A stretch of 64,000 bases of DNA from Isurus oxyrinchus (GCA_026770705.1 JANJGN010000724.1:1-64000); one strand, 5' to 3'. Positions 1-45,216 are shown, numbered from the stretch's first letter. Numbers and translations are program-made. The notes: generated from the letters alone by a model not told the origin.

Positions 1-3000
1 TCTCATCCTCCTCCTCATCCCCCCTCATCTACCTCCTCATCTCCCTCCTCTTCCTCCTCCTCTACCCCCTCCGCATCATCTCCCTCCTCATCTCCCACCT
101 CATCCCCCTCCTCATCCCCCTCCTCATTCCCCTCCTTATCACCTCCTCATCTCCCTGCTCATCTCCCTCCTCATCCCCCTCCTCATCCCCCTCCTCATCC
201 TCATCCCCTCCTCATCTCCCTCCTCATCCCTCTCCTCTTCCCCTCGTCATCCCCCTCCTCATCCCCCTCCTCATCCACTCCTTATCCTCCTCCTCATCTC
301 CCTCCTCTCCTCCTCATCTCCCTCCTCATCCCCCTCCTCATCGCCTCCTCATCCTCCTCCTCACCTCCCTCCTCATCCCCCTCCTCATCCCCCTCCTCAT
401 TCCCTCCTCATCTCCCTCCTCATCTCCCTCCTCATCCCCCTCCTCATCCCCCTCCTCATCCCCCTCCTCATCAACTCCTCAACTCCCTCCTCATGCCCCT
501 CCTCATCGCCTCCTCATCCTCCTCCTCATCTCCCTCCTCATCCCCTCCTCAACTACCTCCTCATTCCCCTCCTCATCCCCTTCTCATCCCCTCCTCATCC
601 CCCTCCCTATCCCACTCCTCATCCCCCTCCTCATCTCCCTCCTCATCCCCCTCCTCATCCCCTCCTCATCCCCTCCTCATCCTCCTCCTCATCCCCTCCT
701 CATCCCCTCCTCATCCTCCTCATCCTCCTCCTCATCTCCCTCCTCATCCCCCTACTCATCTCCCTCCTCCTCCCCTCCTCATCCCCTCCTCATCCTCCTG
801 CTCATCTCCCTCCTCATCCCCCTCCTCATTGCCTCCTCATCCTCCTCCTCACCTCCTTCCTCATCCCCCTCCTCATCCCCCTCCTCACCCCCTCCTCATC
901 TCCCTCCTCATCTCCGTCCTCATCCCCCTCCTCATCCCCCTCCTCATCCCCACCTCAACTCCCTCCTCATGCCCCTCCTCATCCCCTCCTCATCTCCCTC
1001 CTCATCCCCTCCTCAACTCCCTCCTCATCCCCCTCCTCATCCCCTTCGCATCCCCTCCTCATCCCCTCCTCATCCTCCTCCTCATCTCCCTCCTCATCCC
1101 CCTCCTCATCCCCTCCTCATCCTCCTCCTCATCCCCTCCTCATCCCCTCCTCATCCCCTCCTCATCTCCCTCCTCATCCCCTCCTCATCCCCTCATCATC
1201 CCCTCCTCATCCCCCTCTTCATCCCCTCCTCATCCTCCTCTCATCTCCCTCCTCATCCCCCTCCTCATCCCCCTCCTCATCTCCCTCCTCTTCCTCCTCC
1301 TCAACTCCCTCCCATCCTCCCCTCATCCCCCTCCTCATCCCCTCTCCTCATCCCCCTCCTCATCTCCCTCCTCATCTCCCTCCTCATCCCCCTCCTCATC
1401 CCCCTCCTCATTCCCCTCCACATCCTCCTCCTCATCCCCCCCTCATCTACCTCCTCATCTCCCTCTCTTCCTCCTCCTCTTCCTCCTCCGCATCATCTCC
1501 CTCCTCATCTCCACCTCATCCCACTCCTCATCCCCCTCCTCATTCCCCTCCTTATCACCTCCTCATTTCCCTGCTCATCTCCCTCCTCATCCCCCTCCTC
1601 ATCCCCCTCCTCATCCCCCTCCTCATCCTCATCCCCTCCTCATCTCCCTCCTCATCCCCCTCCTCTTCCCCTCGTCATCCCCCTCCTCATCCACTCCTCA
1701 TCCTCCTCCTCATCTCCCTCCTCATCCCCTCCTCATCCCCTCCTCCTCCTCCTCCTCATCTCCCTCCTCATCCCCCTCCTCATCGCCTCCTCATCCTCCT
1801 CCTCACCTCCCTCCTCATCTCCCTCCTCATCCCCCTCCTCATTCCCTCCTCATCTCCCTCCTCATCCCCCTCCTCATCCCCCTCCTCATCCCCCTCCTCA
1901 TCCCCTACTCAACTCCCTCCTCATGCCCCTCCTCATCGCCTCCTCACCCTCCTCCTCATCTCCCTCCTCATCCCCTCCTCATCCTCCTCCTCATCTCCCT
2001 ACTCATCCCCTCCTCATCTCCCTCCTCATCCCCTCCTCATCCCCTCCTCATCCTCCTGCTCATCTCCCTCCTCATCCCCCTCCTCATCCCTCATCTCCCT
2101 CCTCATCTCCCTACTCATCCCCCTCCTCATCCCCCTCCTCATCCCCTCCTCAACTCCCTCCTCATCCCCTCCTCATCTCCCTCCTCATCCCCCTCCTCTT
2201 CCCCTCGTCATCCCCTCCTCATCCCCCTCCTCATCCACTCCTCATCCTCCTCCTCATCTCCCTCCTCATCCCCTCCTCATCCCCTCCTCCTCCTCCTCAT
2301 CTCCCTCCTCATCCCCCTCCTCATCGCCTCCTCATCCTCCTCCTCACCTCCCTCCTCATCCCCCTCCTCATCCCTCTCCTCATCCCCTCCTCATCCTCCT
2401 CCTCATCTCCCTCCTCATCCCCCTACTCATCTCCCTCCTCATCCCCTCCTCATCCTCCTGCTCATCTCCCTCCTCATCCCCCTCCTCATTGCCTCCTCAT
2501 CCTCCTCCTCACCTCCTTCCTCATCCTCCTCCTCATCCCCCTCCTCATCCCCCTCCTCATCCCCCTCCTCATCCCCTCCTCAACTCCCTCCTCATCCCCT
2601 CCTCATCTCCCTCCTCATCCCCCTCCTCTTCCCCTCATCATCCCCTCCTCATCCTCCTCCTCATCTCCCTCCTCATCCCCTCTTCATCCCCTCCTCCTCC
2701 TCCTCATCCCCCTCCTCATCCCCCTCCTCATCGCCTCCTCATCCTCCTCCTCACCTCCCTCCTCATCCCCCTCCTCATCCCCCTCCTCATTCCCTCCTCA
2801 TCCTCCTCCTCATCTCCCTCCTCATCCCCCTACTCATCTCCCTCCTCATCCCCTCCTCATCCCCTCCTCATCCTCCTGCTCATCTCCCTTCTCATCCCCC
2901 TCCTCATTGCCTCCTCATCCTCCTCCTCACCTCCTTCCTCATCCCCCTCCTCATCCCCCTCCTCATCCCCTCCTCATCTCCCCCCTCATCTCCGTCCTCA

Positions 3001-4770
3001 CCCCTCTCCTCATCCCCCTCCTCATCCCCTCCTCAACTCCCTCCTCATGCCCCTCCTCATCCCCTCCTCATCTCCCTCCTCATCCCCTCCTCAACTCACT
3101 CCTCATCCCCCTCCTCATCCCCTTCGCATCCCCTCCTCATCCCCCCCATCCCTCTCCTCATTCCCCTCCTCATCTGCCTCCCTATCCCCTTCTCATCCCC
3201 CTCCTCATCCCCTCCTCATCCTCCTCCTCATCTCCCTCCTCATCCCCCTCCTCATCCCCTCCTCATCCTCCTCCTCATCCCACTCCTCATCCCCTCCTCA
3301 TCCCCTCCTCATCTCCCTCCTCATCCCCTCCTCATCCCCTCATCATCCCCTCCTCATCCCCCTCTTCATCCCCTCCTCATCCTCCTCCTCATCTCTCTCC
3401 TCATCCCCCTCCTCATCCCCCTCCTCATCTCCCTCCTCTTCCTCCTCCTCAACTCCCTCCTCATTCTCCTCCTCATCCCCCTCCTCATCCCTCTCCTCAT
3501 CCCCCTCCTCGTCTCCCTCCTCATCTCCCTCCTCATCCCCCTCCTCATCCCCCTCCTCATTCCCCTCCTCATCCTCCTCCTCATCCCCCCCTCATCTACC
3601 TCCTCATCTCCCTCCTCTTCCTCCTCCTCTTCCCCCTCCGCATCATCTCCCTCCTCATCTCCCACCTCATCCCCCTCCTCATCCCCCTCCTCATTCCCCT
3701 CCTTATCACCTCCTCATTTCCCTGCTCATCTCCCTCCTCATCCCCCTCCTCATCCCCCTCCTCATCCCCCTCCTCATCCTCATCCCCTCCTCATCTCCCT
3801 CCTCATCCCCCTCCTCTTCCCCTCGTCATCCCCTCCTCATCCCCCTCCTCATCCACTCCTCATCCTCCTCCTCATCTCCCTCCTCATCCCCTCCTCATCC
3901 CCTCCTCCTCCTCCTCCTCATCTCCCTCCTCATCCCCCTCCTCATCGCCTCCTCATCCTCCTCCTCACCTCCCTCCTCATCCCCCTCCTCATCCCCCTCC
4001 TCATTCCCTCCTCATCTCCCTCCTCATCTCCCTCCTCATCCCCCTCCTCATCCCCCTCCTCATCTCCCTCCTAATCTCTCCTCATTCCCCTCCTCATCCC
4101 CCTCCTCATCCCCTCCCCAACTCCCTCCTCATGCCCCTCCTCATCCCCTCCTCATCCTCCTGCTCATCTCTCTCCTCATCCCCTCCTCAACTCCCTCCTC
4201 ATCCCCCTCCTCGTCCCCTTCGCATCCCCTCCTCATCCCCCTCCCTATCCCTCTCCTCATCCCCCCTCATCTCCCTCCTCATCCCCTCCTCATCCCCCTC
4301 CACATCCCCTCCTCATCCTCCTCCTCATCTCCCTCCTCATCCCCCTCCTCATCTCCCTCCTCATCCCCCTCCTCATCCCCTCCTCATCCTCCTCCTCATC
4401 CCGGCCTCATCCCTTCCTCACCCCCTCCTCATCTCCCTCCTCATCCCCTCCTCATCCCCTCATCATCCCCTCCTCATCCCCCTCTTCATCCCCTCCTCAT
4501 CCTCCTCCTCATCTCCCTCCTCATCCCCCTCCTCATTCCCCTCCTCATCCCCTCCTCATCTCCCTCCTCATCTCCCTCCTCATCCCCCTCCTCATCCCCC
4601 TCCTCATCTCCCTCCTCTTCCTCCTCCTCAACTCCCTCCTCATCCTCCTCCTCATCCCCCTCCTCATCCCCCTCCTCATCTCCCTCCTCATCCCGCTCCT
4701 CATCCCCTTCTCATCTCCCTCCTCATCCCCCTCCTCATCCCCCTCCTCATCCCCCTCCTCATCCCCCTTT
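1..4770. repeat. Pyrimidine-rich low-complexity satellite, variants of (TCCTCATCCCC/TCCTCATCTCCC)n
   Basis: Almost G-free plus strand built from CCTCCTCATC units; the long P/S/H/L ORFs are a by-product. Confidence 0.97.
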
Positions 4771-6242: not shown

Positions 6243-8349
6243 TTTTTATATTCATTTATGGGATGTGGACGGAACTGGCGAGGCCAGAATTATTGCCCAT
6301 CCCTAATTGCCCTTGAGAATATGGTAATGAGCTGCCTTCTTGAACTGTTGCAGTCCATGTGGTGTAGGTACACCCACAATGCTGTTAGGGAGGGAGTTCC
6401 AGGATTAGGACCCAGTGACTGTAAAGGAACGGCCGATATATTTCCAAGTCAGGATAGTGAGTGACTTGGAGGGTAACTTCCAGGTGGTGGTGTTACCATG
6501 TATCTGCTGACCTGTACTTTGAGATGGTACTGGTCATGTGTTTGAAGGTGCTGCCTAAGGAGTTTTGGTGAGTTTCTGCAGTGCACCTTGTAGCTGGTAC
6601 ACACTGCTGCTACTGTGTGTCGCTTGTGCAGAGAGTGAATGTTTGTGGATGGGGAGCCGAACTAGTGGGGCTGCTTTGTCCTAAGTGGTGTTGAGTTTAT
6701 TGAATCTTGTTGGAGCTGCACTCATGCAGGCAAGTGGAGAGTCTTCCATCACACTCCTGACCTGTGCCTTGAAGACGGTGGACAGGTTTTGGGGAGTCTG
6801 GAGTGAGTTACTCACTGCATGATTCCCAGCCTCTGACCTGCTCTTGAAACCACAGTATTTTTATGGCTGGTCCAGTACAATTTCTGGTCAATGGTAACCA
6901 CCAGGATGTTGATAGTGGGGTATTCAGCAGTGGTAATGTCATTGAACATCAAGGAGCGATGGTTAGATTCTCTCTTATTGGAGATGGTCATTGCCTGACA
7001 CTTGTCAGCCCAAGCCTGGATATTGTCCAGGTCTTGCTGCATTTGGACAAGGACTGCTTCAGTATCTGAGGAGCCGTGAATGGTGCTGAACATTTTGCAA
7101 TCATCAGTGAACATCCACACTTCTGTCCTTATGATGGAAGGAAGGTCATTGATGAAGCAGCTGAAGGTGGTTGGGCCTTGGACACTACCCTGAGTAACTC
7201 CTGCAGTGATGTCCTGGAACTGGGATGATTGACCTCCAACAACCACAACTATCTTCCTTTGTGCTGTGTATGGCTCCAACCAGTGGAGAGTTTTCCCTCT
7301 GTTATGATGTGGTAGATGATGTGTGCCAGGGGACCAAATCCACAAGGGAAACTTGGTCACACTATCACAACGGTTTTGCAATTTGTATTTATTATGAGAT
7401 GTGTGCACTGAATTCAGGAGTAATGTGTCAACCAAGACATTTAGAGATCTTAAAAATTAAATTTTAATATTTATTTAAGATTTAAAGCACACACATAAGG
7501 ATACGGTTACTATTATAACAAATCCTAAACTTCCTAATTAACCTTGAAGATGGTGGTCAGGCATTGGGAAGTCTGGAAGTGAGCAGTAAAACTCCTTTTA
7601 GGCAATAAACCAAAATAGATTTCAGATTTAAAAACAAAACCAGCAAGTTAACACAAAACACACTTGAGAGTGGATTTCCAAATGGCTTTCTCGAACGACA
7701 GTCACTGAACATAACAGACCTATGGACAAATGCCTGGAGGCTTCTTCAAGGCTGATTCACACACTCTTGTTAGATTTTACATGGTCCCCAAAATAGCCTT
7801 TCATTCTCCATTGTTGATGTTTCTCTCTCTTTGATATGTAAATTTCATTGTTCCAAATGTCTTGGGAATTATACTTTTCCCATAATATAAAAACTTTCAT
7901 GTTGCCAATGTTGTCAATAACCTGTGGGAAAAATAAACACACTCCTTTGCCTTGCATATCGGCCTCGTTGTAAACAGACCAACAGCCCTTTGAAATCCAA
8001 ACAATCACGTCACTTATCTAAAAATGCAAATTCCCTTTCTCACCTCACATGCAAAGAAAGCCTCCATGTTCACTCATTAGCATTTCAAGTACATTTCTAC
8101 ACCTAGCTTCTTCTGATAATCTCAAACTTGCAGTCTACCTGACTCCAGATGTAATTAAACCACACAGACAGGCACATCTACACTCACACCCATAAACCTA
8201 GTTTACAACAAACCAGGAAAATATTATGCAAATTATTATAATTTCGTACCACCCCTGATTCCCATTGACTCCAGTTTTGCTCGGGATCCTAGATGCCACA
8301 CTCGGTCAAATGCAGACTTGATGTCAAAGGCAGTCACTCTCACCTCACC
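6243..8349 (-). mobile_element. LINE (CR1/L2-group RT) inserted in the 3' region of gene A, split by a solo LTR
   Basis: ORF 6812-7435 GVTQGSVQGPTTFSCFINDLP...FTDDC (RT motifs); the flanks at ~6240 and ~8350 are contiguous in the paralogous copy at 28200-28260. Confidence 0.8.
7300..8251. mobile_element. Solo LTR, family 1
   Basis: TG...CA termini; homologous copies at 33962-35006 (inverted) and 51617-52542. Confidence 0.7.
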
Positions 8350-8541
8350 TTGTATTAACAGAAGTAAAATTATACATAATACATAAGCTTCTCACAATCT
8401 TTTACAGCATGGAAAAAGGTGCAGCATTCAGAAAGCTCACTCAGAACCAATAAAAAAAGTTGAGCAACATCATATTTGTGTTCATTACTATTTGGCCATG
8501 TTGGCTGCACACACCCCACAGCCCCGCTCCCTGTTTCACAC

Positions 8542-8790
8542 TCAGTTTTTCTGGAACCTGATCTGTGTGTATTCCGTGTCCTCGCTCCTGTGCACAGTCC
8601 TGTCACCGCTGGGCAGCTTTGAAAAGTTGATGTTGGCGTAGAAAAGCTCGTCTGGTTTGTCGGGGTTCCCATGTCCAACATCGCCTCCCACTGCATCTTC
8701 AGAGAGACCCCGGGGAGCTGGGGTCTCCCCCTCGCTAGTTGCGTCTCTCTTTGTGTTCTGGGGCTCAGTAATCAGCACGTTCTGTTCATC
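8542..8790 (-). CDS. Gene A terminal cytoplasmic exon, cassette 3 (ITIM LFYANI + ITSM TEYTQI)
   Basis: ctctgtag|GAT GAA CAG; DEQNVLITEPQ...DELFYANINFSKLPSGDRTVHRSEDTEYTQIRFQKN*. Confidence 0.88.
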   Translation of the reverse strand, partial: DEQNVLITEPQNTKRDATSEGETPAPRGLSEDAVGGDVGHGNPDKPDELFYANINFSKLPSGDRTVHRSEDTEYTQIRFQKN

Positions 8791-8909
8791 CTACAGAGAA
8801 ATGGAAACAGAAGACATCCTCACATCAATTACTGTTACTGATAGGGTTAAATTATTGTGCAGACTCATTTAATTCTCTCTCTCCTATCGGATAAAAGAAA
8901 CCACCAATG

Positions 8910-9120
8910 GCAGTGCAGCACTCCCTCAGTACTGACCCTGCAACAGTGCAGCACTCCCTCAGTCCTGACCCTCTGACAATACAGCGCTCCCTCAGTACTG
9001 ACCCATCGACAGTGCAGCACTCCCTCAGTACTGACCCTCTGTCAGTGCAGCACTCCCTCAGTACTGACCCTCCAACAGTGCAGCACTCCCTCAGTACTGA
9101 CCCTCTGTCAGTCTCGCACT
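8910..9120. repeat. 33-bp minisatellite (CAGTACTGAGGGAGTGCTGCACTGTCAGAGGGT family); also at 11955-12205 and 15050-15265
   Basis: Tandem 33-mers. Confidence 0.9.
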
Positions 9121-9254
9121 CAATCGGTAATGGCTCTGGTGAGTGACGGCTTGGATGCTGCACACAGGTGCCTGGTGTGAGGCTCAATAACATGAACCTT
9201 GTAATCAGAGAGAGGATTAGAGAGAGAGATAGAGATGAAAGAACAGAGACAGAG

Positions 9255-10188
9255 TGTTATGAATCTATTAATGTATGTAATGTAATTGCAAACTGTCTTT
9301 TTAAACAGAGGTTTAGTCTGTGTGTGTGCCTGTGTGTATTTTAATTGGATTAAAGCCAGCCAGTCTGTGTGCTTTGATGTATAGTAGTTTTGAGATGTAA
9401 ACAAAGAGGTAAAGTGGTAATTTGCATTTGTAAATAAAATATTAAATGCCTGAGAGTGAAATCTTAAACCAATCAACGTTTATATTACTAATAAAATTGA
9501 TACGATGAACGGGGATTTATTATTGGAAGAGATGGAGTTCAAAGGTCCTGATGATACATTGCGAAATTACCTTCAAACAGAAGCCATAAGACCATAAGAC
9601 ATAGGAGGAGAAATTAGACCATTCGGTCCATCGAGTCTGCTCCACCATTCATACATGGCTGATATGTTTCACAAACCCAATTCTCCAACCTTCTCTCCTA
9701 ACCTTTGATCCCCTGACCAATCAAGAGCGTATCAATCTCCGTCTTCTTTACACTCAAGAGCTGGGTATAACTTGAGCAGATTTGTGTGTGCAGAGCAGAC
9801 GCTTGTAACATCAAAGCAGCTGTAAGCCTACACCTGTCTGCAAAAAAAACAAAGTGAAAGGAACCTCATTTGGAATTTGTGAGGTGAAAATGCTTTGCCT
9901 GGGTGTCTGCTTAAAGTCTATGGGTTATCTTAGAGGAGATTACTTTGGGAATTTGTTAAAAAGTTATGATAATGCTAGCTTGTAGCCATGTGCATATGTT
10001 TAACTTGTGTTAATTAATAAATGTCTCATGTAGTTTGATATAAACCCATCTCAAGAACTGATGGTCTTATTCCTGAATTTAAAGATGCATCTCACACATT
10101 CCACTGGGAAATATAGGTTATGACAGTTGTTTAAAGTTTCCCTCTGGGATTTTAAACAACAGCCTTTACCAGTTGCTGTGTCATAACA
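9255..10188. mobile_element. Solo LTR-like element in each tail cassette (also 12333-13261 and 15415-16167)
   Basis: Inverted termini TGTTATGA...TCATAACA; cassettes 2 and 3 carry an extra ~180-bp LINE/SINE-tail insert. Confidence 0.6.
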
Positions 10189-10323
10189 GAGAGACAGCAT
10201 GATACTGAACCATTGCTGACTCCACAGGTACAAATCAGTGGGTAACTGGGCTGGGAATCTGGGACACGTGTTGTCTACACACTGAGATTGAAGCTTTGGA
10301 GTGAGTGTAAACAGCTCCTGTAC

Positions 10324-10405
10324 CTGGTGCTTCACAGAGAGTGGACTGGGGGTCAATGCAATGTCTCTGGTCCCTGAAACTCTCTCCTCCATCGCTGTCT
10401 TTCTC
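10324..10405 (-). CDS. Gene A juxtamembrane cytoplasmic exon, cassette 3
   Basis: ttgcag|G...CAG|gtacag, 82 nt, phase 2 to 0, RKTAMEERVSGTRDIALTPSPLSVKHQ. Confidence 0.8.
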
Positions 10406-10545
10406 CTGCAATAACACAATATCACACTGTGGTTATCATATAGCAGAGAGTCAGTGCAGCACAGACACAGAGCCCACTGTAACCTTACACCAACGACTGG
10501 GACTGTCTCTTTAAATCAGTTCTGCACAAAGCACAGAATCAAGAA

Positions 10546-11000
10546 ACTCGACACCATCCAGGACAAAGCAGCCCGATTGATCTACACCCCATCCCCCACA
10601 TTAAACATTCACTCCCTCCACCATGAACACACAGTGGCAGCAGTGTGTGTACCATCTACAAGATGCACTGCAGCAACTCAGCAAGGCTCCTTCAACAGCA
10701 CCTTCCAAACCCACGACCTCTACCATCTAGAAGGACAAGGGCAGCAGACACATGGGAACACCACAACCTGGAAGTTCCCCTCCAAGTCACTCACCATCCT
10801 GACTTGGAAATATATCACCGTTCCTTCACTGTCGCTGGGTCAAAATCCTGGAACTCCCTCTCTAAAAGCACTTTGGGTGTACCTACGCCACATGGACTGC
10901 AGCGGGTCAAGAAGGCAGCTCACCACCACCTTCTCAAGGGCAATTAGGGATAGGCGTTAATGCTGACATCACCAGTGACAGCCACATTCGATGAAATAAT
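10546..11000 (+). mobile_element. LINE 3' fragment repeated in each cassette (also ~13620-14070 and ~16530-16980)
   Basis: LDTIQDKAARLI...HSLHH...YKMHCSN, same family as the 6243-8349 LINE. Confidence 0.75.
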
Positions 11001-11023
11001 TAAAAATCTCACAGCTCAATGTA

Positions 11024-11029
11024 TTTATT
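11024..11029 (-). terminator. Candidate polyA signal AATAAA for cassette 2 (cassette 1 has AGTAAA at 14096-14101)
   Basis: tttatt ~560 nt downstream of the stop at 11587, at the edge of the repeated unit. Confidence 0.5.
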
Positions 11030-11586
11030 GTGACCCTGCTGCACACACGCCCTGTTGAAGGAGCCTTTGTGGTTCCATTGTTAATCGAAGCAGATCAGAG
11101 TTACTATAACTACTTGCATTTATATAGCACCTTCAATGTAGCAAAATGTGCAAAGGCTCATCCAGGGATTGTTAGTGACATCTTCACCTGACTCTGAGGC
11201 ACATGAGGAGATATTAGGGACAGGAGACCAACAGCTGAGTCAACAAAGTCAGTTATTAACGGGCATCTTAAAGGAGGAGCTGGAGATAGAGAATGAGAGA
11301 CAGACACAGAAAGAAAGACAGAGAGAGGGAGGGAGAGAGAGAGAGAGAGAGGGAGAGAGTGAGGGGGAGAGAGAGAGAGAGAGAGACAGTGAATCTCTAT
11401 CCCCAATGGCTCAGCATCCAGTCCTCTCTGGAGAAGCATTTCATTCCAAACCACACCAATCGCAGCCCAATTCCATCCCTTCCTCCCTCTCTCCCCCTCT
11501 CCCCCAGTGGGTTGCTTCCTGTTCCCAGGAATCTCAATCCCTACCCCCAACCCCATACCTCCTCACTCACTCTCCCCATTTCTCAT

Positions 11587-11835
11587 TCAGTTATGCTCGA
11601 ACCTGATCTGTGCGTATTCCGTCTCCTCTTCCCTGTGGACAGACCCATCACCACTGGACATCCTCAAGACTTGGGGATTGGCGTAGAGAAACTCTTCAGG
11701 TTTGTCGGGGTTCCCATGTCCAACATCGGCTCCCACTGGACGTTCAGAGAGACCCCGGGGAGCTGGGGTCTCCCCCTCGCCAGTTGCGTCTCTCTTTGTG
11801 TTCTGGGGCTCAGTAATCAGCACGTTCTGTTCATC
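11587..11835 (-). CDS. Gene A terminal cytoplasmic exon, cassette 2 (FLYANP + ITSM TEYAQI)
   Basis: ctctgtag|GAT; 249 nt open to the stop, ...EEFLYANPQVLRMSSGDGSVHREEETEYAQIRFEHN*. Confidence 0.82.
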   Translation of the reverse strand, partial: DEQNVLITEPQNTKRDATGEGETPAPRGLSERPVGADVGHGNPDKPEEFLYANPQVLRMSSGDGSVHREEETEYAQIRFEHN

Positions 11836-13396
11836 CTACAGAGAAATGGAAACAGAAGACATCCTCACATCAATTACTGTTACTGATAGGGTTAAATTAT
11901 TGTGCAGACTCATTTAATTCTCTCTCTCCTATCGGATAAAAGAAACCACCTATGGCAGTGCAGCACTCCCTCAGTACTGACCCTCCAACAGTGCAGCACT
12001 CCCTCAGTGCTGACCCTCCGACAATACAGCGCTCCCTCAGTACTGACCCATCGACAGTGCAGCACTCCCTCAGTACTGACCCTCTGTCAGTGCAGCACTC
12101 CCTCAGTACTGACCCTCCAACAGTGCAGCACTCCCTCAGTACTGACCCTCCAACAGTGCAGCACTCCTTCAGTACTGACCCGCTGTCAGTCCCGCACTCC
12201 CTCGGTAATGGCTCTGGTGAGTGACGGCTTGGATGCTGCATACAGGTGCCTGGTGTGAGGCTCAATAACATGAACCTTGTAATCAGAGAGAGGATGAGAG
12301 AGAGAGATAGAGATGAAGGGATAGAGACAGAGTGTTATTAATCTATTAATTTTTGTATTGTAATTGCAAACTGTCTTTTTAAACAGAGGTTTAGTCTGTG
12401 TGTGTGTCTGTGTGTATTTTAATTGGATTAAAGCCAGCCAGTCTGGGTGCTTTGATGTATAGTAGTTTTGAGATGTAAACAAAGAGGTAAAGTGGTAATT
12501 TGCATTTTTAAATAAAACATTAAATGCCTGAGAGTGAAATCTTAAACCAGTCAACGTTTATATTACTAATAAAATTGATACGATGAAAGGGGATTTATTA
12601 TTGGAAGAGATGGAGTTCAAAGGTCCTGATGATACATTACCAATTTACCTTCAAACAGAAGCCATAAGACCATAAGACATAGGAGGAGAAATTAGACCAT
12701 TCGGTCCATCGAGTCTGCTCCACCATTCATACATGGCTGATATGTTTCACAAACCCAATTCTCCCACCTTCTCTCCTAACCTTTGATCCCCTGACCAATC
12801 AAGAGCGTATCAATCTCCGTCTTCTTCACACTCAAGAGCTGGGTATAACTTGAGCAGTTTTGTGTGTGCAGAGCAGACGCTTGTAACAGCAAAGCAGCTG
12901 TAAGCCTACACTTGTCTGCAAAGGAACCAAAGTGAAAGGAACCTCATTTGGAATTTGTGAGGTGAAAATGCTTTGCCTGGTGTCTGCTTAAAGACAATGG
13001 GTTGTCTTAGAGGAGATTAGTTTGAGAATTTGTTAAAAATTTTTGATAATACTAGTTTGTAGCCATGTGCATATGTTTAACTTGTGTAAATTAATAAATG
13101 TCTCAAGTAGTTTGATATAAAACCATCTCGAGAACTGCTGCTCTTATTCCTGAATTTAGAGATGCATCTCAAACATTCCACTGGGAAATTTTATGACAGT
13201 TGTTTAAAGTTTCCCTCTGGGATTTTAAACAACAGCCTTTACCAGTTGCTGTGTCATAACAGAGAGACTGCATGATACTGAACCATTGCTGACTCCACAG
13301 GTACAAATCAGTGGGTAACTGGGCTGGGAATCTGGGACATGTGTTGTCTACACACTGAGATTGAAGCTTTGGAGTGAGTGTAAACAGCTCCTGTAC

Positions 13397-13478
13397 CTGG
13401 TGCTTCACAGAGAGTGAACTGGGGGTCAATGCAATGTCACTGGTCCCTGAAACTCTCTCCTCCATCGTTGTCTTTCTC
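13397..13478 (-). CDS. Gene A juxtamembrane cytoplasmic exon, cassette 2
   Basis: 82 nt, AG/GT intact, RKTTMEERVSGTSDIALTPSSLSVKHQ. Confidence 0.78.
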
Positions 13479-14655
13479 CTGCAATAACACAATATCACAC
13501 TGTTGTTATCATATAGCAGAGAGTCAGTGCAGCACAGACACAGAGCCCACTGAAACCTTACACCGACAACTGGACTGTCTCTTTAAATCAGTTCTGCACA
13601 AAGCACAGAATCAAGAATCTCGACACCATCCAGGACAAAGCAGCCCGATTGATCTACACCCCATCCACCACATTAAACATTCACTCCCTCCACCATGAAC
13701 ACACAGTGGCAGCAGTGTGTGTACCATCTACAAGATGCACTGCAGCAACTCAGCAAGGCTCCTTCAACAGCACCTTCCAAACCCACGACCTCTACCATCT
13801 AGAAGGACAAGGGCAGCAGACACATGGGAACACCACCACCTGGAAGTTCCCCTCCAAGTCACTCACCATCCTGACTTGGAAATATATCACCGTTCCTTCA
13901 CTGTCGCTGGGTCAAAATCCTGGAGCTCCCTCCCTAACAGCACTGTGTCTGTACCTACACCACATGGACTGCAGCGGGTCAAGGAGGCAGCTCACCACCA
14001 CCTTCTCAAGGGCAATTAGGGATGGGCATTAACGCTGACATCACCAGTGACAGCCACATTCGATGAAAGAATTAAAAATCTCACATCTCAATGTATTTAC
14101 TGTGACCCTGCTGCACACACGCCCTGTCGAAGGAGCCTTTGTGGTTCCATTGTTAATCGAAGCAGATCAGAGTTACTACAACTACTTGCGTTTATATAGC
14201 ACCTTCAATGTAGCAAAATGTCCCAAGGCTCATCCGGGGCTTGTTAGTGACATCTTCACCTGACTCTGAGGCACATGAGGAGATATTAGGGACAGGAGAC
14301 CAACAGCTGAGTCAACAAAGTCAGTTATTAACAGGCATCTTAAAGGAGGAGCTGGAGATAGGGAATGAGAGACAGACACAGAAAGAAAGACAGAGACAGG
14401 GAGAGAGAGAGAGAGAGAGAGAGGGACAGATTGAGAGAGAGAGAGAGAGAGAGAGACAGTGAATCTCTATCCCCAATGGCTCAGCATCCAGTCATCTCTG
14501 GAGAAGCATTTCATTCCAAACCACACCAACCGCAGCCCAATTCCATCCCTTCCTCCCTCTCCCCCCTCTCCCCCAGTGGGTTGTTTCCTGTTCCCAGGAA
14601 TCTCAATCACTACCCCCACCCTGATACCTCTTCACTCACTCTCCCCATTTCTCAT

Positions 14656-14904
14656 TCAGTTATGCTCGAACCTGATCTGTGCGTATTCCGTCTCCTGTTC
14701 CCTGTGGACAGACCCATCACCACTGGACATCCTCAAGACTTGGGGATTGGCATAGAGAAACTCTTCAGGTTTGTCGGGGTTCCCATGTCCAACATCGGCT
14801 CCCACTGCACCTTCAGAGAGACCCCGGGGAGCTGGGGTCTCCCCCTCACTAGTTGCGTCTCTCTTTGTGTTCTGGGGCTCAGTAATCAGCACGTTCTGTT
14901 TACC
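14656..14904 (-). CDS. Gene A terminal cytoplasmic exon, cassette 1 (FLYANP + ITSM TEYAQI)
   Basis: ctctgtag|GGT AAA CAG; 249 nt open to the stop, ...HREQETEYAQIRFEHN*. Confidence 0.82.
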   Translation of the reverse strand, partial: GKQNVLITEPQNTKRDATSEGETPAPRGLSEGAVGADVGHGNPDKPEEFLYANPQVLRMSSGDGSVHREQETEYAQIRFEHN

Positions 14905-16302
14905 CTACAGAGAAATCGAAACAGAAGTTATCCTCACATCATTTACTGGCACTGATAGGGTTAAATTATTGTGCAGCCTTGTTAATGTCAGTCGTGTCTC
15001 AGTTGGTTTAACCCTCTCTCTCATGTCATATGAAAGATACCACCTATGGCAGTGCAACGCTCCCTCAGGACTGACCCTCCGACAATACAGCGCTCCCTCA
15101 GTACTGACCCTCCGACAGTGCAGCGCTCCCTCAGTACTGACCCTCCGACAGTGCAGCGCTCCCTCAGTACTGACACTCCGACAGTGCAGCTCTCCCTCAG
15201 TACTGACCCTCTGACAGTGCAGCACTCCCTCAGTACTGACCCTCTGTCAGTCTTGCACTCCCTCGGTAATGGCTCTGGTGAGTGACAGTTGGATTCTGCA
15301 CTCAAGTGTCTGGTGTGAAGCTCATTAACATGCACCTTGTAATCAGAGAGAGGATGAGAGAGAGAGAAAGAGAGAGAGAGAGAAAGAAAGGGAGGTTGGG
15401 ATAGAGAGAGAGACTGTCATGATGCGATTAATAAATATCATGTTATTGGAAATTATTTTTATTCACATCGGGGTTTAGTCTGTGGGTGTGTCTGTGTGTG
15501 TTTTAATTGGATTAAAGCCAGCCAGTCTGGGTATTTGATGTATAGTAGTTTTGAGATGTAAACTGAGGCATAAAAATTTGTATTTTTAAACAGAGCATTC
15601 AACGCCTGAGAGTGAAATCTTAAACCAATCAACATTTATTTTATTGATAAAATTGATACTATGACAGAGGATTTATTGTGAAAAGAGATGGAGTTCAAAG
15701 GTCCTGATGATACAATGAGAATTTACATTCAAAGAGAAGCACTGGGTATAACTTGAGCAGTTTTGTGTGTGCAGAGCAGAGGCTTGTAACATCAAAGCAG
15801 CTGTAAGCCTGCACCTGTCTGCAAAGGAACCAAAGTGAAAGGAACCTCATTTGGAATTTGTGAGGTGTAAATGCTTTGCTGGAATCTGCTTAAAGTCTAT
15901 GGGTTGTCTTAGAGGAGATTAGTTTGGGAATTTGTTAAAAAGTTATGATAATGCTAGCTTGTAGCCATGTGCATATGTTTAACTTGTGTAAATTAATAAA
16001 TGTCTCATGTAGTTTGATATAATACTATCTCGAGAACTGGTGGTCCTATTCTTGAATTTAGAGCTGCATCTCAAACATTCCACTGGGAAATATAGGTTAT
16101 GACAGTTGTTTAAAGTTTCCCTCTGGGATTTTAAACAACAGCCTTTACCAGTTGCTGTGTCATAACAGAGAGACAGCATGATACTGAACCATTGCTGACT
16201 CCACAGGTACAAATCAGTGGGTAACTGGGCTGGGAATCTGGGACATGTGTTGTCTACACACTGAGATTGAAGCTTTGGAGTGAGTGTAAACAGCTCCTGT
16301 AC

Positions 16303-16384
16303 CTGGTGACTCACAGAGAGTGGACTGGGGGTCAATGCAATGTCACTGGTCCCTGAAACTCTCTCCTCCATCGCTGTCTTTCTC
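16303..16384 (-). CDS. Gene A juxtamembrane cytoplasmic exon, cassette 1
   Basis: tttcag|G AGA AAG...CAG|gtacag; an extra in-frame donor TCT|GTGAGT at 16315. Confidence 0.8.
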
Positions 16385-17105
16385 CTGAAATAACACAATA
16401 TCACACTGTGGTTATCATATAGCAGAGAGTCAGTGCAGCACAGACACAGAGCCCACTGTAACCTTACACCAATAACTGGACTCTCTCATTAAATTACATC
16501 TGCACAAAGCACAGAATCTAGAATCTCGACACCATCAACAACAAAGCAGCCCGATTTATCGACACCCCATCCACCACATTAAACATTCACTCCCTCCACC
16601 ATGAACACACAGTGGCAGCAGTGTGTGTACCATCTACAAGATGCACTGCAGCAACTCAGCAAGGCTCCTTCGACAGCACCTTCCAAACCCACGACCTCTA
16701 CCATCTAGAAGGACAAGGGCAGCAGACACATGGGAACACCACCACCTGGAAGTTCCCCTCCAAGTCACTCACCATCCTGACTTGGAAATATATCACCATT
16801 CCTTCACTGTCGCTGGGTCAAACTCCTGGAACTCCCTCTCGAACAGCACTGTGGGTGTACCTACACCACATGGACTGCAGCGGGTCAAGAAGGCAGCTCA
16901 CCAACACCTTCTCAAGGGCAATTAGAGATAGCATATTAATAGCGGCCTCATCAGTGACAGCCACATTCGATGTAAGAATTTAAAATCTCACAGCTCAGGA
17001 GGAAGCCACTCAGCCCATCGTGCCTGTGCTGGCCCTTTGTAAAAACTGTCCAATTAGTCCTAAACAAATTTTTATATTAAAATCAAGTTAAATCTTCAGA
17101 CTTAC

Positions 17106-17202
17106 TTTCTCACACAGATGAAGATGAAGATTTCAGCCAGTAAAACACTCAACATGATCCCAGCCGTGAACAATCCTACTGTCCATTTACTGGTGTCTCT
17201 AC
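17106..17202 (-). CDS. Gene A transmembrane exon
   Basis: ttttacag|GT...AA|gtaag; RDTSKWTVGLFTAGIMLSVLLAEIFIFICVRK; phase 1 to 2 fits both neighbours. Confidence 0.88.
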
Positions 17203-17298
17203 CTGTAAAAACAGCCATGAATTACTGCACTACAGGTTTGGAATGATGCTCCGATGTATCTCTTCCTCCCTGCTCTCCATCTGTAAAGTACCTAGTCT

Positions 17299-17547
17299 NN
17301 NNNNNNNNNNNNNNNNNNNNNNNNNNNNNNNNNNNNNNNNNNNNNNNNNNNNNNNNNNNNNNNNNNNNNNNNNNNNNNNNNNNNNNNNNNNNNNNNNNNN
17401 NNNNNNNNNNNNNNNNNNNNNNNNNNNNNNNNNNNNNNNNNNNNNNNNNNNNNNNNNNNNNNNNNNNNNNNNNNNNNNNNNNNNNNNNNNNNNNNNNNNN
17501 NNNNNNNNNNNNNNNNNNNNNNNNNNNNNNNNNNNNNNNNNNNNNNN
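17299..17547. other. Assembly gap (249 N)
   Basis: Run of n. Confidence 1.
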
Positions 17548-17578: not shown

Positions 17579-17860
17579 GTTCCACAGTGATGGTTATGAA
17601 CCCCTCCACTGCTCCATGTTCATTCTCTGCCACACACTGATAGTCTCCAGTGTCCCTGCATGTAACGTGAGGAATCACCAACCACAGCTCATTGTTGGAA
17701 CTTGTTCTGTTCATTGGGACATTAAGATGTCGCCACGTCAGGTTAGAAGCTGGGAAGCTCTCGACAGAGCAGATTATCACTGCAGAATTCCCCTCAATTA
17801 TATTGATCGATGAAGCATTAATCATATCAAGAGAAGTAATTGAGAGATTCTGTGGTGCGT
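17579..17860 (-). CDS. Gene A second C2/I-set Ig exon
   Basis: YAPQNLSI...IICSVESFPASNLTW...DTGDYQCVAENEHG...ITVE; tttcag| and |gtgagt; 282 nt. Confidence 0.92.
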
Positions 17861-17989: not shown

Positions 17990-18345
17990 GTTCAGCACTG
18001 AGAGAGTGCTGAGGGAGAGCTGCACTGTAGCAGATGCAGTGCTGATGGAGTGCTGCACAGTCAGATTGTCAGTTCTGATTGAGAACTGCAATGTGGGAGG
18101 GACAGTACTGAGGGAGCATTGCACTGTTAGAGAGTCAGTAATGAGGGTGTGCTGCACTGTGGGTGGGTCAGTACTGAGGGAGAGCTGCACTGTAGCAGGT
18201 GCAGTGCTGATGGAGTGCTGCACAGTCAGACTGTCAGTTCTGATGGAGAACTGCAATGTGGGAGGGACAGTACTGAGGGAGCATTGCACTGTTAGAGAGT
18301 CAGTAATGAGGGAGTGCTGCACTGTGGGTGGGTCAGTACTGAGGC
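17990..18345. repeat. Diverged 33-bp minisatellite
   Basis: Same family as the 25960-27900 array. Confidence 0.85.
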
Positions 18346-22271: not shown

Positions 22272-22568
22272 ATTGCACCGTTAGTACGAGGGTCCGCTCC
22301 GATGAAACAGATGGATATCTCACTCTGCAGCTGAGAGTGTGTCCGTGGTGTTTGAGTGATGGGATCAGGGTCAGAACAGAAGTATAGGTCAGAGTGACAC
22401 CATGCTGAGTTACAGTGTTTGAGACTGATCCAGGTACGTCAGTGGGAGTGTCCCAGGTTAAGACAGGTGCTGCTGTTCCATTGCACGTTGTGTTGAAGGT
22501 GCAGCTTACATCCACACGCTTTCCTGCAATAATTTCAGCAGGGAATATCGTGGGTTTATCTGTGAAAT
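22272..22568 (-). CDS. Gene A first C2-set Ig exon
   Basis: DFTDKPTIFPAEIIAGKRVDVSCTFNTTCNGTAAPVLTW...SVLTLIPSLKHHGHTLSCRVRYP...LTVQ; Siglec domain-2 pattern with the extra Cys; 297 nt. Confidence 0.93.
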
Positions 22569-23883: not shown

Positions 23884-24252
23884 CAGAAACGTGAAGCTGG
23901 GTTACAGGGTAATAGTTATGGCTCGGACCATTGTCAAATTCTATTCTGAAATAATAAGGTCCTGCATCTTCCCGTCTGATGTTGTTTATAATCAGGGAAC
24001 AGTCGCCATCTTTCAGGTCTCCAGACAGCCGGGTCCGACTGTGGAACCGTGGTAACTCGTGACTGTGATCCTTGGAGTGAAAGGCAATGGGAGGCCAGGG
24101 AATCTGTTTCTCATTATTAAACCAGAGTCCGACTTGTCGTTTGTTTTCAAAATATGCTGGATAACTGTAGTGACACCGAATCTGTACACACGAACCTTCC
24201 TGCGCTGTCACCTCTCGTGGAGTGTCACCTTTCCACTCTTGTGACAGTCCAA
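23884..24252 (-). CDS. Gene A V-set Ig exon, essential Arg present
   Basis: EGSCVQIRC...W...GDLKDGDCSLIINNIRREDAGPYYFRIE; Siglec Cys pattern (no F-strand Cys) and F-strand Arg; 369 nt, phase 1-1. Confidence 0.95.
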
Positions 24253-25774: not shown

Positions 25775-25959
25775 AGCAAAGGAGTGAGTAAACAGGCAGT
25801 AGGAATGAGTGCTTCATACCACAAAGCGTTACAACATAATCACACTTTTGACCTATTTATTGTGATTCTGTGATGCTTCTCTTCTGTTGTTTGCTATTTG
25901 GTAACGTCAGTTTTTTACCATGGCTCCGAGGGTTAATATTTAATTGTGCTGTTGCAGGG

Positions 25960-27900
25960 TAAATACTGAGCAAATGCGGCACCATCAGGGGGTCAGTACT
26001 GATGGGGTGCTGCTCTGTCGCAGGATCAGGTCTGAAGAAGTGCTGCTCTGTTGGAGGGTCAGCAGCAAAGGAGTTCTGCACTGTAGAGTATTGGTGTATT
26101 GTTCCTGAGGGCGTGCTGCACTGTCAGAGGGTCAGTACTGAGGGAGTGCTGCACTGTCAGAGGGTCAGTACTGAGGGAGTGCTGCACTGTCAGAGGGTCA
26201 GTACTGAGGGAGTGCTGCACTGTCAGAGGGTCAGTACTGAGGGAGTGCTGCACTGTCAGAGGGTCAGTACTGAGGGAGTGCTGCACTGTCAGAGGGTCAG
26301 TACTGAGGGAGTGCTGCACTGTCAGAGGGTCAGTACTGAGGGAGTGCTGCACTGTCAGAGGGTCAGTACTGAGGGAGTGCTGCACTGTCAGAAGGTCAGT
26401 ACTGAGGGAGTGCTGCACTGTCAGAAGGTCAGTACTGAGGGAGTGCTGCACATTCAGAGGGTCAGTACTGAGGGAGTGCTGCACTGTCGGAGGGTTAGCA
26501 CTGAGGTAGTGCTGCACTGTCAGAGGGTCAGTACAGAGGGAATGCTGCACTGTCGGAGGCTCAGTACTGAGGTAGTGCTGCACTCTTGGAGGGACAGTTC
26601 TGAGGAGTGCTGCCCTGTCGGAGGGTCAGTACTGAGGGAATGCTGCACTGTCAGAGTCTTGTTCCTGAGGGAGTGCTGCACTGTCAGAGGGACAGTACTG
26701 AGGGAGTGCTGCACTGTCAGAGGGTCAGTACTGAGGGAGTGCTGCACATTCAGAGGGTCAGTACTGAGGGAGTGCTGCACTGTCGGAGGGTACGTACTGA
26801 GGTAGTGCTGCACTGTCAGAGGGTCAGTACAGAGGGAATGCTGCACTGTCGGAGGCTCAGTACTGAGGTAGTGCTGCACTCTTGGAGGGACAGTTCTGAG
26901 GAGTGCTGCACTCTTGGAGGGACAGTTCTGAGGAGTGCTGCCCTGTCGGAGGGTCAGTACTGAGGGAGTGCTGCACTGTCAGAGTCTTGTTCCTGAGGGA
27001 GTGCTGCACTGTCAGAGGGACAGTACTGAGGGAGTGCTGCACTGTCAGAGGGTCAGTACTGAGGGAGTGCTGCGCTGTCAGAGGGTCAGTACTGAGGGAG
27101 TGCTGCACTGTTGGAGGGTCAGAACTGAGGTAGTGCTGCACTGTCGGAGGGTTAGTACTGAGGTAGTGCTGCACTGTCATAGGGTCAGTACTGAGGGAGT
27201 GCTGCACTGTCGGAGGGTCAGTACTGAGGGAGTGCTGCACTCTTGGTGTGTCAGTACTGAGGGAGTGCTGCACTGTCAGAGGGTCAGTATTGAGGAAGTG
27301 CTGGACACTTGGTGTGTCAATACTGAGGTAGTGTCGCACTCTTGTATGGTCAGTACTGAGGGAGTGCTGCACTGTTGGAGGGTCAGTACTGAGGGAGTGC
27401 TGCACTGTCGGAGGGTCAGTACTGAGGGAGTGCTGCACTGTCGGAGGGTCAGTACTGAGGGAGTGCTGCACTGTCAGAGTCTTGTTCCTGAGGGAGTGCT
27501 GCACTGTCAGAGGGACAGTACTGAGGGAGTGCTGCACTGTCAGAGGGTCAGTACTGAGGGAGTGCTGCACATTCAGAGGGTCAGTACTGAGGGAGTGCTG
27601 TGCTGTCAGAGGGTCAGTACTGAGGGAGTGCTGCACTGTTGGAGGGTCAGAACTGAGGGAGTGCTGCACTGTCGGAGGGTCAGTACTGAGGTAGTGCTGC
27701 ACTGTCGGAGGGTCAGTACTGAGGTAGTGCTGCACTGTCGGAGGGTCAGTACTGAGGTAGTGCTGCACTGTCAGAGGGTCAGTATTGAGGAAGTGCTGGA
27801 CACTTGGTGTGTCAATACTGAGGTAGTGTCGCGGTCTTGTATGGTCAGTACTGAGGGAGTGCTGCACTGTTGGAGGGTCAGTAGTGAAGGAGTGCTGCAC
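25960..27900. repeat. 33-bp minisatellite, ~1.9 kb
   Basis: (CAGTACTGAGGGAGTGCTGCACTGTCAGAGGGT)n with higher-order variant blocks. Confidence 0.97.
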
Positions 27901-28238
27901 TATCTAAAGAACATTGTACAAGTTTCACAAAATTGCATCGAATGCCTTTGTCTCACTAACTTCAAATTTAGAACAGGAATATTTCTCGCTGTTTCTGAGC
28001 AGCAAGGCAGCTTTGATATCACACCACCCAATGGCAGGAGTGCCTAACTACAATGTGACATGTTTACATGGGAAGTTTCCATTATAAAGATGGGCACAAT
28101 AATTCACATGATTGGAAAATCGTCACAACATGAAGTAATGTCTTTGAGCCAAGATTTTGCAGTAAAATGAGAAATTTTATGTGTAAATATCTACAGAACA
28201 GGCTGAGCATTTTAATCACTTGTGTTAATCAATGTAAT

Positions 28239-31834: not shown

Positions 31835-31874
31835 CTTGGAGAAGTGACAGGAGGAAGTAAGATTTTCCAATCAT
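31835..31874 (-). CDS. Unit B signal-peptide exon, intact
   Basis: MIGKSYFLLSLLQ G|gtaat. Confidence 0.75.
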
Positions 31875-32704: not shown

Positions 32705-33200
32705 AGTGTCAGTACTGAGGGAGTGCTGCACTGTCAGTGGGTCAGTACTGAGGGAGTGCTACACTGTCAGAGGAACAGTACTGAGGGAGTGCAGCACTGT
32801 CGGAGGGTCAGTACTGAGGGAGTGCTACACTGTCAGAGGGACAGTACTGAGGGAGTGCTGCACTGTCAGAGGGACAGTATCGAGGGAGTGCTAATCTGTC
32901 GGAGAGACAGTTTTGAGGGAGTGTTGCACTGTCAGAGGGACAGTACTGAGGAATTGTTGCGCTGTTGGAGGGTCAGTACTGATGGAGTGCTGCACTGTCG
33001 GTGGGACAGTCCTCAGGGAGTGCCGCACTGTCGGAGGGTCAGTACTGAGGGAGTGTTGTACTGTTGGAGGTTCAGTACTGAAAGTGCGCTGCACTGTCGG
33101 AGGGTCAGTACTGAGGGAGTGTTGTACTGTCAGAGGTTCAGTATTGAGTGAGTGCTGCACTGTCAGAGGGTCAGTACTGAGGGAGTGCTGCACTGTCAGG
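32705..33200. repeat. 33-bp minisatellite
   Basis: Tandem 33-mers. Confidence 0.92.
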
Positions 33201-33421
33201 GGGTGAGTACATTGAGATTCCTGCTCTGCTCTATCAGCCCCTTGGCTGGACATAAAAGCCGCTGTGTTAATGTTCAGAAACGGTTATTAATTGTATTCTG
33301 GTCACCATTTTCCCTCAAAGACAGATTATCTGATTGTCATCAGAATACCTTTCTATGGGATCCTGCTGAGCGTAATCTTGACTGTTCCAGCGAATGTATA
33401 ATGAAGGGTGTCCATACTTAC

Positions 33422-33718
33422 CTTGCACAGTTAGTACGAGGGTCCGCTCCGATGAAACAGATGGATATCTCACTCTGCAGCTGAGAGTGTGTCCGTGGTG
33501 TTTGAGTGATGAGATCAGGGTCAGAACAGAAGTATAGGTCAGAGTGACACCATGCTGAGTTACAGTGTTTGAGACTGATCCAGGTACGTCAGTGGGAGTG
33601 TCCCAGGTTAAGACAGGTGCTCCTGTTCCATTGCACGTTGTGTCGAAGGTGCAGCTTACATCCACAGGCTTTCCTGCAATAATTTCAGCAGGGAATATCG
33701 TGGGTTTATCTGTGAAAT
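33422..33718 (-). pseudogene. Pseudogene C first C2 exon (ORF still open)
   Basis: 297 nt, splice sites intact, near-identical to 22272-22568. Confidence 0.85.
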
Positions 33719-35006: not shown

Positions 35007-35091
35007 GTGTTATTATGTAAACGTCAGAGTTTGTGTTCATTCCCATTGAGTGTTGAATGTGAATGTTGAGTAATTATAACACCGCACATAC

Positions 35092-45176: not shown

Positions 45177-45216
45177 ATGATCGGGAAATCCTACTTCCTC
45201 CTGTCACTTCTCCAAG
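45177..45216 (+). CDS. Gene D signal-peptide exon (the exon starts at 45137)
   Basis: MIGKSYFLLSLLQ G|gtaat. Confidence 0.88.

Follow-up and report, generated by a model that had tools for sequence, protein, structure and literature searches.

The window studied here, i.e., the whole stretch of 64,000 nucleotides from Isurus oxyrinchus (GCA_026770705.1 JANJGN010000724.1:1-64000; positions are counted from its first letter), contains on its minus strand a gene which, judged from its sequence, is predicted to encode a Siglec-like (CD33-like Siglec) receptor of this lamniform shark. Its single transmembrane (TM) exon is followed by three tandem cassettes of two cytoplasmic exons, A and B, and just before the stop of each B exon lies a GT in the phase required for splicing to a next exon A. 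That the modules are stacked in series as the main product, possibly with shorter forms, is a reading for which our confidence is about evenly divided. The use of the internal donor in this gene and the consequences for signalling are what we infer from the arrangement.

The proposed history and product are the following: (i) a two-exon module (A, 82 nt, plus B) would build the cytoplasmic tail; (ii) an old duplication would have given a membrane-proximal type, in which the immunoreceptor tyrosine-based inhibitory motif (ITIM) was lost (FLYANP) and TEYAQI was kept, and a distal type with the ancestral LFYANI and TEYTQI; (iii) later, and in this lineage, cassettes 3 and 1 would have recombined within exon B by unequal crossover, which would have produced a hybrid middle cassette and brought the number of cassettes to three; (iv) B would be a composite exon, which either ends the protein at its own stop or is spliced from a weak internal donor to the next exon A. 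A serial tail of this kind would have as many as six tyrosine motifs, i.e., YANP, TEYAQI, YANP, TEYAQI, ITIM and the immunoreceptor tyrosine-based switch motif (ITSM), with the ITIM/ITSM module last. Shorter forms would result when a B exon serves as last exon.

Tail cassettes and their tyrosine motifs

Exons were handled singly and frames were derived by arithmetic. The TM exon (17106..17202, minus strand like all the exons of this gene; 97 nt) is entered in phase 1 and left in phase 2. It has the acceptor ttttacag and the donor AAA/GTAAGT (the slash marks the joint) and encodes the peptide RDTSKWTVGLFTAGIMLSVLLAEIFIFICVRK. A Glu is found at 17134-17132 (minus strand) in the TM segment …SVLLAEIFIFICV, at a position where all the retrieved shark homologues with this TM segment have Gly (…FLAGIFIFICV). 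This Glu may reflect either a relaxed constraint on the gene or a functional charged TM residue.

The tandem unit is about 3.05 kb long and its copies are 91-94 % identical (blastn). Exons A1 (16303..16384; 82 nt, phase 2 in and phase 0 out), A2 (13397..13478; 82 nt) and A3 (10324..10405; 82 nt) have the acceptors ttatt(t/g)cag and the donors CAG/GTACAG. Exons B1 (14656..14904), the hybrid B2 (11587..11835) and B3 (8542..8790) have 249 nt each, stop included. Splice sites are intact and frames are open in all three copies. When the exon peptides were searched with tblastn over the whole window, the TM exon was found once and A and B three times each, all A and B exons lying within the triplication; no Ig or TM exon was found between the cassettes. 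This exon arrangement had been described in the first-pass annotation, a reading of the same DNA by a model, and the coordinates agree within 1-2 nt; the absence of intervening TM or Ig exons and the motifs given below are likewise borne out.

The peptides of B1 and B2 end with …KPEEFLYANPQVLRMSSGDGSVHRE(Q/E)ETEYAQIRFEHN before the stop and contain EEFLYANP...TEYAQI, and that of B3 ends with …KPDELFYANINFSKLPSGDRTVHRSEDTEYTQIRFQKN before the stop and contains DELFYANI...TEYTQI. Cassette 3 shows the pattern of an inhibitory tail of the CD33-related type, i.e., an ITIM, (S/I/V/L)xYxx(I/V/L), represented by LFYANI, then TxYxx(V/I), represented by the ITSM TEYTQI. Cassettes 1 and 2 have the second motif (TEYAQI) and YxN only, FLYANP departing from an ITIM at −2 (Phe) and at +3 (Pro). 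It must be noted that YANI of the ITIM type likewise contains YxN. No Pfam family was found in the tail peptides.

Internal donor of exon B and proposed serial joining

Exon B contains an internal donor (…CAG ATC AG/GTTCGA…), the GT of which is localized 12 nt before the stop codon and in phase 2, i.e., the phase of the TM donor and the phase accepted by exon A. The last exon base at this donor is 14672 in B1, 11603 in B2 and 8558 in B3. The exon shortened in this way (B') has 233 nt, and A + B' amounts to 82+233 = 315 nt, i.e., 105 codons with phase 2 at both ends, so that modules can be stacked in frame. A 5' splice site upstream of the stop, with downstream exons in frame, is the structure of a composite internal/terminal exon. 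According to the first-pass annotation, the phases limit each mRNA to exactly one 82-nt exon. This premise is true only if B is always terminal, and it fails here, since a GT in phase 2, 16 nt ahead of the end of the stop codon, allows cassettes to be stacked.

In B3 the internal GT is degenerate (CAG/GTTCCA), the G at +5 being lost. The donors were scored with a rough position weight matrix, the scores being indicative only: 5.2 for TM, 0.8 for exon A (CAG/GTACAG), −0.2 for the internal donor of B1 and B2 and −4.2 for that of B3. For the exon A donor, with its modest 0.8, a splice to exon B is visible in the RNA-like run X1 (see below). The internal donor is thus better in the non-terminal copies (B1 and B2) than in B3, the last module.

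Serial joining is displayed by models of related sharks. In seven NCBI models, two modules meet exactly at QIR/(R or K)KT (…TEYAQIR/RKTA…), namely P0001 and P0017 (Cetorhinus) and P0016, P0018, P0031, P0032 and P0033 (Carcharodon); accessions of double-tail models are XP_041037239.1, XP_041037234.1, XP_041037157.1 and XP_041037065.1 for Carcharodon, and XP_078389619.1 and XP_078389744.1 for Cetorhinus. In P0018, P0032 and P0033 the FLYANP module is first and the ITIM module second, i.e., the same order as in the present gene. Among the retrieved models, no sequence which is the first of two modules in these seven is found as a last or only module.

Sequence after the stops and RNA-derived contigs

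The sequence which follows the B1 stop (named UTR_x, for untranslated region; 14091..14655, minus strand) contains neither AATAAA nor ATTAAA, and none of them occurs in the 1177 nt up to A2; only AGTAAA is found, at 14101. The second copy of UTR_x (11019..11586, minus strand), downstream of B2, contains one AATAAA (11029-11024), 558 nt past the stop. The 3' UTR of cassette 3 (8356..8541, minus strand) cannot be aligned with UTR_x and ends at AATACA beside a retroelement fragment. This AATACA (8356) is the only such element past B3, the first canonical polyadenylation (polyA) signal being at 7475. The cassettes had been credited earlier with different UTRs and their own polyA-like signals: the distinct downstream sequence and the AATAAA after B2 are confirmed, and a canonical signal after B1 is not.

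A 16-nt perfect inverted repeat (CTGTTGAAGGAGCCTT / AAGGCTCCTTCAACAG) occurs at 11052-11067 / 10683-10698 and at 14124-14139 / 13755-13770, and also at 16661-16676. It flanks the end of the post-stop sequence and, in unit 2, also the AATAAA at 11029. This repeat may form a fold of the pre-mRNA, or may belong to the interspersed element described below.

None of the sequencing runs that contain the stretch is recorded as RNA, and Logan contigs only were available. Contigs from three RNA-like runs and one DNA-like run were mapped on 11300-17298, i.e., on cassettes 1 and 2; this region is the scope of all the contig results given here. The mapping is dominated by repeats and paralogues and contig depth is unreliable. 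In one contig of run X1 the joint 11834/13396, with CT..AC ends, corresponds to the A2-to-B2 splice. Contig ends of the same run at 17105 continue into the first 13 nt of an exon A of the A1/A3 type, which corresponds to the TM-to-A splice. One contig of 191 nt is identical to the A1-B1 intron and thus pre-mRNA or DNA is present in its run. The contigs over the 5' half of B1 are mostly paralogous: at 14856, 14863 and 14864 none of them has the letters of the window. The letter of this gene type (Met of …LRMSS…) makes up about two thirds of the X1 depth at 11661.

Two observations on depth are weak for the reason given above: in X1 the depth over the coding part of B2 with this Met codon is far above that of UTR_x, and in the three RNA-like runs the depth after the stops is at the level of introns. 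The latter fits transcripts which leave the DNA near the end of B. No polyA end after the B stops was found among the joints and ends listed. No TM-to-A2 or TM-to-A3 junction was seen, the only TM-to-A contig end reading the A1/A3 letter, and more generally the contig mapping gave no RNA junction of the kind that would show a choice among cassettes.

Stacked modules or a choice of tails

In the first alternative the tails are mutually exclusive: the TM donor would pair with A1, A2 or A3, each B would be terminal, and one ectodomain would signal either via an ITIM-less YxN/ITSM tail or via an ITIM/ITSM tail. We hold this to be unlikely. Each B does have its own stop, followed by downstream sequences that differ, and the AATAAA after B2 agrees with terminal use of that exon, whereas no canonical polyA signal is present after B1 and the depth over UTR_x stays, for what contig depth is worth, at intron level in the three RNA-like runs. 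Two A exons cannot be joined directly, since 82 nt break the frame, which speaks for exclusivity; joint inclusion, which is impossible or frame-breaking in a mutually exclusive cluster, is nevertheless in frame here by means of A + B'. No docking/selector complementarity was found between the unique part of the TM-A1 intron (17105-16998) and the sites before A1-A3. The sole strong inverted repeat in this comparison is one of 16 nt, within each unit.

The related species can be read in both directions. Both tail types are conserved across species, as a choice between them would lead one to expect, and Carcharodon P0030 joins TM directly to the module that is second in P0031; these two models are on different contigs and may represent different loci and not a splice choice. 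On the other hand, all the two-cassette models of related sharks (7/7) stack their modules, and a TM junction with A2 or A3 is missing from the contigs. Stacking is thus favoured over exclusive choice by the in-frame donor, the uniformity of the related models and the lack of a polyA signal after B1, as well as by the better donor of the non-terminal copies and the lack of a selector structure. The alternative last-exon choice proposed in the first-pass annotation is therefore retained as one ectodomain gene with two conserved tail types, and abandoned as enforced exclusivity.

Conservation of the two module types

A profile built from the three B peptides was used to query 1.8 billion proteins; P0001 then served as query for tails, and the members of its cluster were compared. 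The profile matches only shark Siglec-like proteins, the NCBI names of which range from Siglec-7 to Siglec-14. The great white shark protein P0032 (XP_041037239.1) is made of TM, A, FLYANP module, A and ITIM module. The tyrosine halves of B1 and B2 are identical to its module 1 at 33-34/34 positions and that of B3 to its module 2 at 31/34, but the 5' halves of B at only 33-37/44. In other words, identity between species is 91-100 % in the tyrosine halves and 75-84 % in the neighbouring 5' halves.

In a tree of 36 modules, B1 and B2 cluster with the first modules of P0018, P0032 and P0033 from Carcharodon (97/96) and B3 groups with ITIM-type last modules (83/74). All YANP-type modules form one clade (100/99), nested among the ITIM types, and the sharks outside the lamniforms have the ITIM type only. 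The shared order, the identities with P0032 and the module tree indicate that an ITIM-less first module and an ITIM last module were already present, in this order, before the split from Carcharodon. The motif halves of both types are under purifying selection across species. Since both types are conserved, both are probably translated, and this speaks against the use of one cassette only.

Origin of the three copies

The copies are not equally distant along the unit. From the start of the unit to the middle of the A-B intron, exon A included, all copies are 4-6 % apart with mixed site patterns. Over the remaining half of this intron and ~60 nt into exon B, copies 2 and 3 are 3.4 % apart and copy 1 is ~14 % from both. 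An insertion of ~175 bp in the A-B intron is common to copies 2 (12662..12839, minus strand) and 3 (9584-9747) and is absent from copy 1. From mid-exon B on, it is copies 1 and 2 which are close (1.3 % in the coding part, 4.1 % over the 563 nt past the stop), copy 3 being 21-22 % from both in the coding part and unalignable from ~15 nt past its stop. Upstream of mid-exon B, copies 2 and 3 agree against copy 1 at 99 sites and copies 1 and 2 agree at 16; downstream, the corresponding numbers are 3 and 41 (Fisher p = 3e-21). The switch is localized between 11779 and 11741 in the three-way alignment, i.e., the first ~60-95 nt of B2 are copy-3-like and the remainder is copy-1-like.

The mosaic site pattern and the shared insertion thus designate copy 2 as a recombinant, with a copy-3-like 5' part and a copy-1-like 3' part. 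Such a product is expected if, in a gene with two cassettes, cassettes 3 and 1 underwent one unequal crossover, and the divergence on the two sides of the switch (3.4-3.9 % for copies 2 and 3, 4.1 % for copies 1 and 2) fits a single event. Upstream of the motif halves the copies have been homogenised; the motif halves have not, which fits selection keeping the two tail types different. These types are 22 % apart in nucleotides (dS ~0.5). The dN/dS ratio is ~1 for the recent differences among copies and 0.6 between types, the sites being too few to decide on use. Exon A shows 3-4 changes among the recent copies, none of them synonymous; in the 5' half of B, 4-5 changes are non-synonymous and 0-1 synonymous. 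Copy 2 may add nothing new: its module is again of the first type, and the recent changes in it look neutral.

Two repeats accompany the units. An interspersed element of ~475 bp heads each unit (16513-16985, 13607-14078 and 10535-11006), and a fourth, inverted copy (6243-6707) is found downstream of the gene; this element may have mediated the first duplication. A 33-bp satellite (…GGGTCAGTACTGAGGGAGTGCTGCACTGTCAGA…) is present in each A-B intron with differing copy numbers (8911-9112, 11956-12207 and 15050-15251). It occurs elsewhere at 18005-18344, 25956-27901 and 32708-33210, including a 2-kb array, and dominates read mapping in all runs.

Weight of the readings

Several points weigh against stacking. 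The internal donor is weak (+3 is T and +4 is C). In 3/3 copies the four codons past the donor and the stop are intact and at the same position, which fits terminal use too. No B'-to-A junction is present among the 15 joints listed out of 779 in the contig mapping of 11300-17298. The NCBI models are automatic, and two of them begin within an intron or a domain, a trait of models that are partly ab initio. Finally, the Glu of the TM segment, found in no homologue, hints that the gene may be decaying, and the dN/dS of ~1 among recent copies suggests that copy 2 may evolve neutrally.

In a second alternative, which also seems improbable to us, one cassette only would be used, i.e., TM-A1-B1 with a non-canonical end, or TM-A3-B3 with the rest skipped, and the others would be silent by-products of crossover. 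The dN/dS of the recent copies, with mostly non-synonymous changes in exon A and 5' B, is in agreement with this, and an intact 249-nt frame is expected by chance at 3-4 % divergence; the splice sites, however, are all intact in the three copies. Copy 2 is young and may contribute nothing, and at 14856, 14863 and 14864 the window's own letters are read in 0/4 runs. The age of the two types points the other way: 22 % of divergence and a dS of ~0.5 mean that both have been kept for long, and the tyrosine halves are more similar to those of great white shark (91-100 %) than the 5' halves are (75-84 %).

The third alternative, i.e., an assembly artefact in which alleles or a collapsed repeat were placed in tandem, is hardly credible and was rejected on divergence and indels: the region is indeed rich in repeats (33-bp satellite and ~475-bp element in each unit), a run of N is found 100 nt before the TM exon and no independent DNA contig across a unit boundary was seen in 11300-17298, but the copies are 3.4-14 % apart with a 175-bp insertion and differing satellite copy numbers, i.e., far beyond allelic difference, the mosaic is what unequal crossover gives, and at least two cassettes are present in the same order in related species.

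Ectodomain

Upstream of the TM exon the gene has one V-set and two C2-set exons. The leader exon (MIGKSYFLLSLLQ; 31835..31874, minus strand, 40 nt, donor phase 1), found by six-frame motif search and sequence, recurs unchanged in the shark Siglec-like models P0003 and P0021. The V-set exon (23884..24252, minus strand, 369 nt) matches Pfam V-set (1.3e-11) and Ig_CD22 (1.1e-9) and has the Siglec arginine motif GPYYFRIEF. When the V domain was compared with PDB (phmmer), the top 17 matches were all Siglecs; among the matched structures are MAG, Siglec-7, Siglec-5, CD33, Siglec-8, sialoadhesin and Siglec-10. GPYYFRIEF is aligned with GKYYFRGDL of MAG, YYFR falling on the arginine-bearing YYFR. C2-set exon a (22272..22568, minus strand, 297 nt) matches Pfam C2-set_2 (2e-7) and is 95 % identical to P0032; C2-set exon b (17579..17860, minus strand, 282 nt) matches Pfam Ig_3 (3e-12) and was obtained by tblastn with P0028 and P0032.

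The product is called Siglec-like on account of the Pfam and structure matches of its V domain and of the names Siglec or CD33-like given by NCBI to its shark homologues. An N-terminal V-set domain with the conserved F-strand arginine of sialic-acid binding, then C2-set domains and a single TM segment, are predicted, as in Siglecs. The 249-N run (17299..17547) lies inside the intron between C2-set exon b and the TM exon; more exons could be hidden there if it is a gap.

Other features of the window

Extra V-set and C2 exons are found at 33357-33665 and 35066-35476 on the minus strand, upstream of the leader (31874). They are 79-89 % identical to the corresponding exons of the gene described above, and the window shows neither a leader nor a TM or tail exon that would go with them; they may represent a gene fragment or belong to an adjacent gene. 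A second Siglec-like gene is localized at 45177-60929 on the plus strand, with a leader at 45177, V exons at 52927, 56706 and 59012, and then C2 exons. As the NCBI models P0003, P0021 and P0010 of related sharks have two or three V domains in series, the V exons of this second gene may be stacked and not chosen. A short open frame (40445-40561, minus strand), which ends with …NPDTDDDLYANCEFAEDSVYGNL before its stop and belongs to no gene mapped in the window, looks like a tail exon, with two tyrosines at the spacing of an immunoreceptor tyrosine-based activation motif. Lastly, an array of 4.8 kb made of a 12-bp unit (CTCATCCCCCTC) occupies 2-4768 and has an extreme GC skew.

Comparison with known systems

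The CD33-related Siglecs (Siglec-5 to -11 and CD33) have the same V-set domain with the YxFR arginine, C2-set domains and a single TM segment. Their tail has a membrane-proximal ITIM (LxYAxI/L) and, ~20 residues further on, TEYxxI/V; cassette 3 is exactly so. The present gene differs in that the two tail exons are repeated three times in tandem and that the proximal copies are ITIM-less (Pro at +3, Phe at −2). The likeness to mammalian Siglecs is one of build, and no orthology to any of them is claimed for the shark gene.

The tail of CD22 (Siglec-2) has six tyrosines which mix ITIMs, an ITIM-like motif and a Grb2-recruiting tyrosine (PMC3342095). A product with three modules would match these six tyrosine motifs, YxN sites included. 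The motifs of the shark gene would come from a repeat of 105 codons, and it has 3 Ig domains for 7 in CD22. We know of no description of the CD22 tail as made of recently duplicated exon pairs.

In immunoglobulin mu, a weak 5' splice site in Cmu4 competes with the mu-s polyA site, and the choice sets a secreted or a membrane C-terminus. A weak 5' splice site within an exon able to end the coding region would be the common point. The shark gene differs in two respects: its downstream exons are copies of the upstream ones, so that splicing on lengthens a repeat and adds no membrane anchor; and competition with a polyA site is only inferred, B1 being followed by no canonical signal. In CEACAM1-L/S and in the exon 14/15 variants of PECAM-1, one ectodomain likewise receives by splicing a tail with or without ITIM/ITSM. 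There, exons are skipped (frame shift or loss of motif), whereas here tandem exon pairs each have a stop.

A further system is that of the lamniform double-tail models of NCBI, in which the same TM, A and B modules are joined at QIR/RKT and, in XP_041037239.1, the FLYANP…RMSSGDGS module is first and the ITIM module last. They have two modules and not three, and are automatic predictions without published description. Among papers on shark or cartilaginous-fish Siglec tails, none with this layout was found; the first-pass annotation, which knew of no such Siglec, agrees with this as to the literature, but a double tail is already displayed in the database models of great white and basking shark.

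Meaning for the Siglec family

Inhibitory receptors of the Siglec type determine the threshold at which innate cells and B cells become activated, and the gain or loss of ITIM, ITSM and Grb2-type motifs in their tails is usually studied between paralogous genes. We find it quite doubtful, though conceivable, that the weak internal donor, in competition with downstream 3'-end formation, acts as a dial which sets one, two or three tail modules. If so, the short forms would be without ITIM (YxN/ITSM, i.e., adaptor or switch) and the full form would end with ITIM/ITSM and be inhibitory; the cell type or the activation state would set the sign and the strength of signalling; and a design in stackable modules would be common to the whole lamniform Siglec cluster.

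Independently of such a dial, this one gene of a cartilaginous fish appears to show the process itself, i.e., duplication of a module, loss of the proximal ITIM, gene conversion which spared the motif halves, and a further unequal crossover. Since a GT in the right phase just before the stop would allow duplicated tails to be added in series, it may be a simple route to tails with multiple tyrosines, of which the CD22 tail is an example. Should both short and long forms be produced, the signals sent by a single lectin domain could differ.

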